From the NCBI GenBank assembly GCA_964270895.1, contig OZ185436.1: DNA of 64,000 nucleotides; one strand, given 5' to 3'. The notes under the pieces were generated by a model, which saw only the letters and a list, made by a program, of their open reading frames with translations, made no database searches and was not told the origin of the DNA. Positions 49,743 to 60,704 of the stretch are shown here, piece by piece. The first letter of the stretch is position 1. Every line of letters begins with the position of its first letter. Position numbers and translations under genes: made by a program. Origin of the DNA: Podarcis filfolensis. Lineage: Eukaryota.

Positions 49743-49911
49743 CTACTGGTCAGTGGAGATTTCTCTGTCTGGCTCCAATTTGCTTGACTCTCCCGGAGAA
49801 GGGGTATGGGGTGCAGAGTGAGACACAGAGGGAATACCGTGAGGTACAATCCCCTCTACTGGTGGCTCTGGGAGCCCTGTGGCTGCTACTCCCACTACTC
49901 CTGGAGGAAAC
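49743..49911 (-). CDS. CTBP-like exon 9 (last coding exon)
   Basis: [58 protein letters not shown] at 49745-49743. Confidence 0.92.
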
Positions 49912-58900: not shown

Positions 58901-60704
58901 GATGCTACACAGATACAGGATTATTTGTGCAATAGTGTTAGGCCACAGGGCATTATACGCAGTGTCACCTAAGAATGGTCCAGCTCACACATTAAAGCAT
59001 CCAGATAAGAAACCATTGTCAGGCAATTAAAGGAATTAGTCACAAGATGAGGCAACCACTGCATAAGAATTAAGAAAGCATAATGTCAAATAACAGCTGA
59101 GCCAGCAACACAACCCGTTTCTTCACAATTCTCTTTACTTTCAAGTAACCACACATCTGCTGCCGAACAGATGAAGTTCCTTACTTTCTTTTCTAACTTT
59201 ACTTTAGAACAGTCTTGCAGGTGGCCTCTTGACTCAGGGAAAGAACAATACCTTCCAGCCTCACTACTTAGATCAGACTGGGTTACTTTGGCAAGCAGAC
59301 AAGCTGAAAATTTATATGGAAGTCTGGAGAAGTGGGCGGTGGCTCCAGAGACCACATTAACAGTACTTCAATTAAGAAAAAAGAGGCAATGACACAGAGT
59401 CTTAAAAGGGGGCTGTGAATAATGGACTGATTCCAGACTTAGGCCAACTGAAGTCCCATTGAATAAATGAGACTTCACTTCAACTAACCTAATCCAGATC
59501 CAATACAATGTTCTGCACTTTTCAGTTAGACTAGCCCTCCCAATTTCCCACACAATGCGAGAAGACTCAGGAAGCACCTGTCAGAAGCATCAACAGTTTA
59601 CTTGGGAGAGGTTTACTTGGACTCTCCCATCAGGCACAACCCAGCTGCCAGAGCTTCTAATGACCCACCACCACAGCACAGCTTTTGCCAGATTCTGCCA
59701 AGATAAAAGCCGTCAATCTTTTCTGCTCCACTTTGAAACATTAGACAGCTGTTTGCATGCCCTGCTTTTATGGAATTACTTTGTTTGAAAATTCAAGATA
59801 CACTATGTCACTTTATAGTTCCATTTCTCCCACAAATTTGAATCCACTTTACTCCTAGTCTAGCACACCATGGGAGTAAAGCTGCTAGTAGTAGCAGTAG
59901 TAGTAGTAGTAGTAGTAGTAGTATCCCATCTTTTCCCCAGACAGGAACTCAAAGTGGCTTATGTAAATTAACACAGTTAAACTATAAAATGCTAAAAACA
60001 TATAAAGGGCAATTGTTAAAAAGCAATTAAGCTCTAATAGGATTAAAACATGGTAAGAAACAAATCTATTAAAATGCAGATAATAAAAACAGCAGTACTG
60101 TATTAAGAGCCCTTTCGGTTTCTGGTCATGAACTTGTTAAGAGTTCATGACCAGAAAAGGAAAACCCCGGTTCTCTTGGCCTTGTCTCTTTCTCCCATCT
60201 ACAATACAGGGATAAGACTGTTGGGCTACCTGATCAGAACACCGTTAAGATTTCTTGAGATGGGAGCATGTGTAGCCACCTGAACCGCTCTGCAAGACCG
60301 GAAACGGGATGTGGCTGCCTTGCTCATGGCTCCCTAAAGGGGAGGGAGACATTTGCACTTGGGCTAATCCTGCTCGTGTACACCTTCAGTATCTGGACGG
60401 ATCTGGCAAGGCTACCAGGATCTAAGCTTTGAGTGGCGAAAGGGCCCCCACGTCCAAGATCCCGTTCACAGAAAGGGGCATGGGGGGCGCGAATAAACCC
60501 TCCGCCTGAAGTCGCCTGTCACTGCGGCGGAAGGACGACGAGATCCTCCGCCTTTTGGCAGAAAGGAAGGCGCTCGCTCGCTGGCCCCGGGGCCAGGCCC
60601 CTTCCCCTTCCCCGCCGCCCAGCGAACGCCTCCCTCCCTCCGCCCAGGGCGTTACCTTCGCAAATGCGGTCGAGCCTCTGGCGCTTCACTTTGTGCCTGT
60701 CCAT
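49743..60704 (-). CDS. C-terminal-binding protein (CtBP) family transcriptional corepressor / D-2-hydroxyacid dehydrogenase; CTBP-like third paralogue, 9 exons, 1320 nt, 439 aa
   Basis: Exons: 60656-60704, 57416-57570, 56729-56873, 54490-54696, 52416-52630, 51416-51546, 51166-51293, 50428-50548, 49743-49911. All GT-AG and in phase, with no internal stop. Motifs: [34 protein letters not shown] (Rossmann fold), [26 protein letters not shown]. Family assignment is secure. No symbol is given because the synteny fits neither CTBP1 nor CTBP2. Confidence 0.93.
50428..50548 (-). CDS. CTBP-like exon 8
   Basis: [39 protein letters not shown]; not in the ORF track. Confidence 0.93.
50893..51028. mobile_element. 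Palindromic hAT-type MITE (136 bp), CTBP-like intron 7; older related copies near 7985-8105 and 52950-53085
   Basis: TIR CAGGCATCCCCAACCT / AGGTTGGGGATACCAG; TSD GTCTAAGT / GCCTAAGT; long internal inverted symmetry. Confidence 0.8.
51166..51293 (-). CDS. CTBP-like exon 7
   Basis: [42 protein letters not shown]. Confidence 0.95.
51416..51546 (-). CDS. CTBP-like exon 6
   Basis: [43 protein letters not shown]. Confidence 0.95.
52416..52630 (-). CDS. CTBP-like exon 5
   Basis: [23 protein letters not shown]...[13 protein letters not shown]. Confidence 0.95.
53860..54250 (-). mobile_element. L2-type LINE 3' fragments
   Basis: Reverse-complement similarity to 62450-62660 (gtggaacgccctcccttcagatgtcaagga...). 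Confidence 0.7.
54490..54696 (-). CDS. CTBP-like exon 4
   Basis: [28 protein letters not shown]...[11 protein letters not shown]. Confidence 0.95.
55068..55361. mobile_element. Tc1/mariner (Tigger-like) MITE, CTBP-like intron 3
   Basis: TIR CAGTGGTGCCTCGCAAGAC / GTCTTGCGGGGCACCACTG with TA flanks. Confidence 0.85.
55456..55618. mobile_element. Tc1/mariner-type MITE
   Basis: Degenerate TIR CC(AC)ATTTTTCCG / CGGAAAAATACGG with TA flanks. Confidence 0.65.
55957..56197 (+). mobile_element. 3' end of the same RTE-clade LINE family, CTBP-like intron 3
   Basis: Reverse-complement similarity to 42672-42900; encodes a CPHC...SRIGLHSHL-type tail; ends in (GAA)n. Confidence 0.85.
56729..56873 (-). 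CDS. CTBP-like exon 3
   Basis: [48 protein letters not shown]. Confidence 0.95.
57416..57570 (-). CDS. CTBP-like exon 2
   Basis: [51 protein letters not shown]; not in the ORF track. Confidence 0.94.
57703..57885 (+). mobile_element. Degraded tRNA-derived SINE
   Basis: gctcagtg...ctttgtatgcagaaggtc..ttcaatccc tRNA-like head, degenerate. Confidence 0.55.
59886..59923. repeat. (TAG)n microsatellite, CTBP-like intron 1
   Basis: About 12 tandem TAG units. Confidence 0.95.
60119..60157. repeat. Perfect 16-bp inverted repeat with 7-nt spacer
   Basis: TTTCTGGTCATGAACT-tgttaag-AGTTCATGACCAGAAA. Confidence 0.9.

Follow-up and report, generated by a model that had tools for sequence, protein, structure and literature searches.

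The window analysed here, a stretch of 64,000 nucleotides from the lizard Podarcis filfolensis (contig OZ185436.1 of assembly GCA_964270895.1), contains a gene for a C-terminal-binding protein (CtBP) that runs on the minus strand from 60704 to 49743 in nine coding exons. When the gene was rebuilt from the raw sequence, minus-strand translation of positions 49600-60800 gave nine stop-free blocks of clear CtBP sequence, which join into a coding sequence of 1320 nucleotides in a single frame, encoding 439 amino acids. All of its introns begin with GT and end with AG preceded by a pyrimidine tract, the exon phases are compatible, and the stop codon, TAG, lies within exon 9. An earlier note on this DNA, made from the letters alone, had described an in-phase gene of nine exons and 439 amino acids with its own CpG-island promoter, and had taken it for a third CtBP paralogue beside CtBP1 and CtBP2. 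The start and stop recovered here match its coordinates exactly, and the base composition bears out the island. The features of the gene are as follows.

60400..61300, no strand: CpG-island promoter, GC 0.667, CpG observed/expected ratio 0.89; the composition profile has its maximum at 60-61 kb
60656..60704, minus strand: coding exon 1, with ATG at 60704, a KVKRQR nuclear-localisation-type motif, donor GTAACG and one further nucleotide of a split codon
59672..59741, minus strand: alternative first coding exon within intron 1, with a GT donor and the phase of exon 1, matching the N-terminus of Podarcis muralis isoform X2 (P0229)
57416..57570, minus strand: coding exon 2, with an AG acceptor and a GTAAAC donor; the matching region of the orthologue aligns to CtBP1
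56729..56873, minus strand: coding exon 3, Pfam 2-Hacid_dh (E = 5e-9)
54490..54696, minus strand: coding exon 4, ending within the first Gly codons of GLGRVG, Pfam 2-Hacid_dh_C; junction with exon 5 in RNA contigs of 4 runs
52416..52630, minus strand: coding exon 5, with the remainder of the Rossmann motif and FYD, Pfam 2-Hacid_dh_C (E = 3e-15); both junctions in RNA contigs
51416..51546, minus strand: coding exon 6, with NTARGG and DVHESEP, Pfam 2-Hacid_dh_C (E = 1e-15); both junctions in RNA contigs
51166..51293, minus strand: coding exon 7, with TPH and AWYS; both junctions in RNA contigs
50428..50548, minus strand: coding exon 8, where the C-terminal domain begins, with NCVNKEYL; both junctions in RNA contigs
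49743..49911, minus strand: coding exon 9, with VEGIV, SPG and the stop; junction with exon 8 in RNA contigs
45683..49742, minus strand: 3' untranslated region (UTR), covered by RNA contigs to 49000, its distal end probably near 45.7 kb

Every NAD(H)-binding and catalytic motif that the earlier note had named is intact in the predicted protein: GLGRVG at residue 184, FYD at 205, NTARGG at 266, DVHESEP at 293, TPH at 316 and AWYS at 320, with the key residues G184-G186-G189, D207, R269, E298, H318 and W321 all present. These positions are those of human CtBP1 plus three. Pieces of the exons match both domains of the CtBP family, PF00389 (2-Hacid_dh) and PF02826 (2-Hacid_dh_C), and the orthologues possess both. 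The tail of the protein carries KEYL at 356, VEGIV at 402 and SPG/K sites, and its C-terminus is STDQ. Use of the alternative first exon at 59672-59741, as in isoform X2 of P. muralis, would replace the KVKRQR nuclear-targeting N-terminus.

The gene is transcribed and spliced. Logan contigs from four RNA-type runs, which represent four studies and two organisms, were placed on positions 49000-54999; these runs contain approximately 0.2-0.3 of the sampled words of 49743-52630, which is roughly the exonic share. Single contigs skip exactly the intervals 49912-50427, 50549-51165, 51294-51415, 51547-52415 and 52631-54489, each of which has CT..AC ends on the plus strand, equivalent to GT..AG on the minus strand. 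In all four runs, at contig word depths of 31-216, exons 9 and 8, 8 and 7, 7 and 6, 6 and 5, and 5 and 4 are thereby joined at the predicted boundaries. The RNA junctions seen are those of exons 4-9; the junctions between exons 1 and 2, 2 and 3, and 3 and 4 are placed by splice consensus, by homology, and by the length of a 5419-nucleotide contig in which 597 nucleotides lie upstream of exon 5, corresponding to exons 1-4 (556 nucleotides) and a leader of 41 nucleotides. Contigs cover 49000-49909 without a break, and the 5419-nucleotide contig extends about 3.3 kb past 49000; therefore, the 3' UTR is about 4 kb long. Polyadenylation signals (AATAAA/ATTAAA) are located at 45762 and 45653. The interval 50176-45465 is 98.1% identical to P. 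muralis, compared to about 95% in introns and flanking DNA, and the better conservation of the UTR suggests that it is a conserved regulatory one. Interspersed repeats occupy 50800-50999 and 53800-54199 within the introns; there the word depth of the RNA contigs rises to thousands or tens of thousands, and loose ends are numerous.

Full-length relatives of the protein were retrieved by a search of a representative library with exon 5, followed by a profile of the exon pieces and database CtBPs, and then by the closest full-length match. The lizard protein is 99.5% identical over 425 amino acids to 'C-terminal-binding protein 2-like isoform X2 [Podarcis muralis]', the sole difference being the alternative first exon, while across the window as a whole the DNA shares about 95.7% identity with P. 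muralis chromosome OZ076955.1. Over its full length it is 96.8% identical to 'C-terminal-binding protein 2 [Heteronotia binoei]', the representative of a cluster of 147 sequences at 90% identity, 15 listed members of which are from geckos, a skink, snakes, falcons and frogs. Calculated by the Nei-Gojobori method on codon-aligned exons, the ratio of nonsynonymous to synonymous substitution rates (dN/dS) comes to 0.034 in the comparison with P. muralis, where dS is 0.03, and to 0.035 in that with the duck Mergus, where dS is 0.91 and dN 0.032, so purifying selection has been strong over both the short and the long distance.

These results bear on the possibility that the gene is a transcribed copy that has no function or is decaying, a view with which the failure of literature searches to find a functional study of the third CtBP paralogue would agree. 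However, nothing interrupts the reading frame, splicing signals are canonical, no catalytic or NAD-binding residue is missing, the third paralogue is 95% identical between lizards and birds at the protein level, and the RNA contigs in the four runs have depths of 31-216. Together with the dN/dS values, this evidence effectively refutes the idea of a decaying copy, which we regard as having almost no chance of being correct. A pseudogene, likewise, is ruled out by dN/dS of about 0.035, the intact frame and the spliced RNA.

The affiliation of the gene was examined in a maximum-likelihood tree of 66 proteins, including 11 from invertebrate outgroups, built with IQ-TREE under the LG+C20+F+G4 model. 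CtBPs of gnathostomes form three clades: CtBP2 (support 100/99), CtBP1 (99/98) and a third (100/90), to which the lizard protein belongs. The other members of the third clade are from squamates, a turtle, birds, amphibians and ray-finned fishes, with a stingray at the base. Squamates are also present in CtBP1 (Erythrolamprus) and in CtBP2 (Varanus, Gekko, Naja). Cartilaginous fishes are found in all three clades, and because the ray is in the third while sharks are in CtBP1 and CtBP2, the duplication must predate the split between cartilaginous and bony fishes. There is no mammal among the third-clade matches listed, which derive from protein searches, no mammalian genomes having been scanned; the one mammalian protein called 'CtBP1-like', a low-quality Urocitellus sequence, is placed in CtBP1. 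The view of the gene in the earlier note, as a third paralogue and not a displaced CtBP1 or CtBP2, is upheld by the separate clade, by the retention in squamates of their own CtBP1 and CtBP2, and by the rejection of a position within CtBP2 described below.

A lineage-specific or relocated copy of CtBP2, instead of an ancient third paralogue, might be suspected from the names 'C-terminal-binding protein 2' and '2-like' that NCBI gives to orthologues, and from the resemblance of the N-terminal exon to that of mammalian CtBP2. The resemblance is not informative on this point: a KVKRQR-type N-terminus also occurs in gecko, bird, amphibian, fish and cyclostome CtBPs, and because the KVKRQR first exon is shared by cyclostomes, CtBP2, the third clade (including its fishes) and the CtBP1 proteins of turtle and frog, it is ancestral and provides no evidence of kinship with CtBP2. 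The lizard protein combines this ancestral N-terminus, which mammalian CtBP2 has kept, with a tail of CtBP1 type in which the final Leu is missing. When the lizard rows are constrained to lie within CtBP2, the tree loses 111 log-likelihood units, and the approximately unbiased (AU) test rejects this placement with p = 3e-61. Varanus, Gekko and Naja have a true CtBP2 that is separate from the third paralogue, and the lizard protein is 80% identical to CtBP1 but 77% identical to CtBP2. With these observations the notion of a CtBP2 copy is effectively refuted, and we give it practically no credence. A recent duplicate of CtBP2 is also ruled out by the tree and the AU test.

In the best tree the third clade joins the cyclostome CtBPs and then CtBP1, as (CtBP1,(cyclostomes, third)) with support of 96/88, and the alternative in which the third clade is the sister of CtBP2 is rejected (AU test, p = 0.021). 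The CtBPs of a lamprey (P0308, Lampetra) and a hagfish (P0314, Myxine) group with the third clade (96/89), not outside the gnathostome paralogues. This placement of the cyclostome proteins may bear on the timing of the duplication or may be an artefact.

The third paralogue is not new. It was named CtBP1-like by Raicu, Kadiyala, Niblock et al. ('The Cynosure of CtBP', Mol Biol Evol 2023, PMC9907507), according to whom CtBP1, CtBP1-like and CtBP2 arose in the ancestor of jawed vertebrates, and CtBP1-like was "lost solely in mammals". The same authors left open whether whole-genome or independent duplication was responsible, and noted that tails of CtBP1-like are typically KEYL...PADQ, that VEGIV is common to CtBP1-like and CtBP1, and that NCBI names of CtBP paralogues are often wrong (PMC9907507). 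The novelty that the earlier note implied must therefore be given up; its guess that an automated label might exist proved right, the P. muralis gene being annotated by NCBI as 'C-terminal-binding protein 2-like'. The lizard protein resembles CtBP1-like as described in that paper in its membership of a clade with ray, fish, amphibian and bird proteins, in the KEYL at the start of its tail, in VEGIV, in the SPG/K sites and in an end of ...DQ without Leu, and in being nearer to CtBP1 than to CtBP2; its last residues are STDQ where PADQ is 'typical', and nothing else of substance is different. Nearness to CtBP1 is also evident in the gecko orthologue P0255 (96.8% identical to the lizard protein), which over its full length matches the solved structure of CtBP1, 8ari, with 786 bits and that of CtBP2, 9wbl, with 740 bits, and which is near-identical to CtBP1 in residues ~27-100, the region of the PxDLS cleft.

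Compared to human CTBP1 (8ari, 1mx3), with which it shares approximately 80% identity, the NAD(H) motif, the catalytic Arg, Glu and His, the Trp and a CtBP1-type tail with VEGIV, the lizard protein belongs to a separate clade and is encoded at a separate locus. Whereas mammalian CtBP1-L starts with MGSSHLL and CtBP1 ends in DQL, the lizard protein has the KVKRQR N-terminus and no terminal Leu. Human CTBP2 (9wbl, 2ome), at approximately 77% identity, has a first exon of similar type, but is in a separate clade and has a tail of the form KEFF...MEG... that ends in NEQ.

The genes next to the CtBP gene, as the earlier note had claimed, are FAM53C upstream and KDM3B downstream, with a REEP-type exon beyond; in the window, FAM53C, the CtBP gene, KDM3B and REEP follow one another on the same strand.

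63357..63629, minus strand: last coding exon of FAM53C, upstream of the CtBP gene, ending ...DFSDLDLTLIEEN, then the stop
41369..41542, minus strand: first coding exon of KDM3B, downstream of the CtBP gene, with ATG at 41542 and Pfam DUF7030; the gene runs towards position 1
28053-28601, 25466-26905 and 16186-16614, minus strand: further large exons, putatively of KDM3B by similarity to human KDM3B
63-31, minus strand: first exon of REEP type (MVSWIISRLVV), starting at 63 and running off the window, in a CpG island at 1-1000 with GC 0.615

The FAM53C exon had no match in Pfam or in the ESM Atlas. The last exon of a P. muralis gene with the Pfam domain FAM53 (PF15242) matches it at 98.9% identity, and the snake sequence 'protein FAM53C [Erythrolamprus reginae]' (P0422) matches it at 82% over 96 amino acids, as far as the stop codon; its identity as FAM53C comes from these two matches. 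The first exon of KDM3B is 83.5% identical to exon 1 of a duck gene with DUF7030, PWWP_KDM3B, Tudor_KDM3B and JmjC domains. The three further large exons, for which Pfam gave no match, are taken to be part of KDM3B from their likeness to human KDM3B, and the REEP exon is presumably that of REEP2, the gene that follows KDM3B in the human order.

The same arrangement was found, in whole or in part, in other species. In P. muralis the order recurs, with a FAM53 gene upstream of the CtBP orthologue. In the duck Mergus, a gene of 1744 amino acids with DUF7030, PWWP_KDM3B, Tudor_KDM3B and JmjC domains is located 7 kb downstream of the orthologue on the same strand, and in the teleost Paramormyrops a gene of 451 amino acids, 55% identical to teleost FAM53C, is located directly upstream of the orthologue on the same strand. 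No neighbours were seen within 10 kb of the orthologue in the frog Ascaphus.

A goby gene model (P0282) fuses FAM53 with a third-clade CtBP in one protein, and true FAM53C proteins (e.g. P0329 and P0422) share the 90%-identity clusters of P0281 and P0255 with third-clade CtBPs, a mixing that probably came about through fused or read-through models of adjacent genes. A model from Polypterus senegalus (P0297, 707 amino acids) joins spondin domains (PF06468 and PF19028) to a CtBP sharing 84% identity with the third-clade protein of the gecko; this fusion may also be an artefact of neighbouring genes. Elsewhere in the window, the open reading frames at 33180-33539 (minus strand) and 62054-62416 (plus strand) look like fragments of retrotransposons, a reverse-transcriptase-like piece and a '...LDYCNVL...' element.

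The gene is real, intact, expressed and constrained, and is a member of a paralogue already known. With high confidence we interpret it as the lacertid orthologue of the third CtBP paralogue of jawed vertebrates, CtBP1-like: an intact, spliced and constrained gene, the product of which would be a corepressor like CtBP1 and CtBP2, and the setting of which fits an origin by genome duplication. The gene order and the pairing with CtBP1 in the tree fit the proposal that the paralogue arose in the early vertebrate genome duplications and would then have been lost in the mammalian stem. In view of its near-identity to both CtBP1 and CtBP2 and the presence of every NAD(H)-binding and catalytic residue, the lizard protein most likely acts as they do. 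It would bind NAD(H) in its Rossmann fold and form dimers or tetramers; transcription factors with PxDLS motifs would dock in its N-terminal cleft, and it would recruit chromatin-modifying repressor complexes.

Several observations weigh against this interpretation. In the tree, a pair of CtBP1 and CtBP2 with the third clade outside it is only marginally worse than the best arrangement (AU test, p = 0.068), and the third clade was outside CtBP1 and CtBP2 in the first tree, which had poor outgroups (a springtail, a nematode and one urchin) and a stray FAM53C with a branch length of 10. Because of this p value and this earlier tree, the pairing of the third clade with CtBP1 is favoured but not settled. 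In the duck, the 10 kb upstream of the CtBP orthologue yielded no FAM53C. The linkages of CTBP1 to FAM53A and of CTBP2 to FAM53B are taken from human map positions. The corepressor mechanism is deduced from sequence, and no binding, NADH or repression assay of the third paralogue was found in the literature. The loss in mammals rests on PMC9907507.

With regard to the origin of the paralogue, the human map presumably has CTBP1 with FAM53A at 4p16.3 and CTBP2 with FAM53B at 10q26.13. Alternatively, a segment with a FAM53-CtBP pair could have been duplicated on a small scale in the stem of jawed vertebrates, so that the third paralogue would be ancient but would not stem from the two rounds of whole-genome duplication (2R); the evidence consists of immediate neighbours, and the AU test leaves the 2R-type pairing not firmly fixed. 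However, the duplication is older than the split between cartilaginous and bony fishes, and on the human map, members of the sets FAM53A/B/C, FGFR3/2/4 and NSD2/NSD1 are taken to share three regions with CTBP1, CTBP2 and FAM53C-KDM3B, as would be expected of ohnologues. A segmental duplication is therefore unlikely, though less so than either a CtBP2 copy or a decaying gene. The genome-duplication origin can be put in a stronger form, which we consider somewhat better than an even prospect: the conservation of the order FAM53C, CtBP1-like and KDM3B between teleost and sauropsid would provide the first evidence from gene position for a true 2R ohnologue that is the sister of CTBP1, settling the choice between whole-genome and independent duplication; the mammalian loss would be a clean excision that left FAM53C next to KDM3B; and most non-mammalian vertebrates would possess, in this paralogue, an NADH-sensing corepressor that is non-redundant and unstudied. 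Full-text literature searches with other names of the paralogue and with CTBP plus FAM53 found nothing beyond the 2023 paper, in which synteny, FAM53 and KDM3B do not occur (PMC9907507). The linkage of FAM53C, CtBP1-like and KDM3B is the only addition made here to that paper; it is a modest one, and favours the origin by genome duplication.

Orthologues of the lizard gene are recorded under diverse names, including CtBP2, CtBP2-like, 'C-terminal binding protein-like' (chicken), CtBP1-like and CtBP1. The third paralogue is labelled CtBP2 or CtBP2-like in sauropsids and amphibians, and CtBP1 or CtBP1-like in fishes (P0287, P0280, P0323, P0338 and others). Since the third clade includes 'C-terminal-binding protein 1 isoform X2 [Danio rerio]', some published work on zebrafish 'ctbp1' may concern the third paralogue.

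CtBPs couple the cellular level of NADH to transcriptional repression and are drug targets in cancer, and nearly all functional work on them has been done in mammals, which have two genes. Most non-mammalian vertebrates have a third CtBP gene that is strongly constrained and expressed, and that is named inconsistently in public records. Such names can mislead those who knock out the gene, use morpholinos or measure expression in chicken, frog and zebrafish. The neighbours FAM53C and KDM3B offer a practical way to recognise the CtBP1-like gene, and a modest argument concerning its origin.

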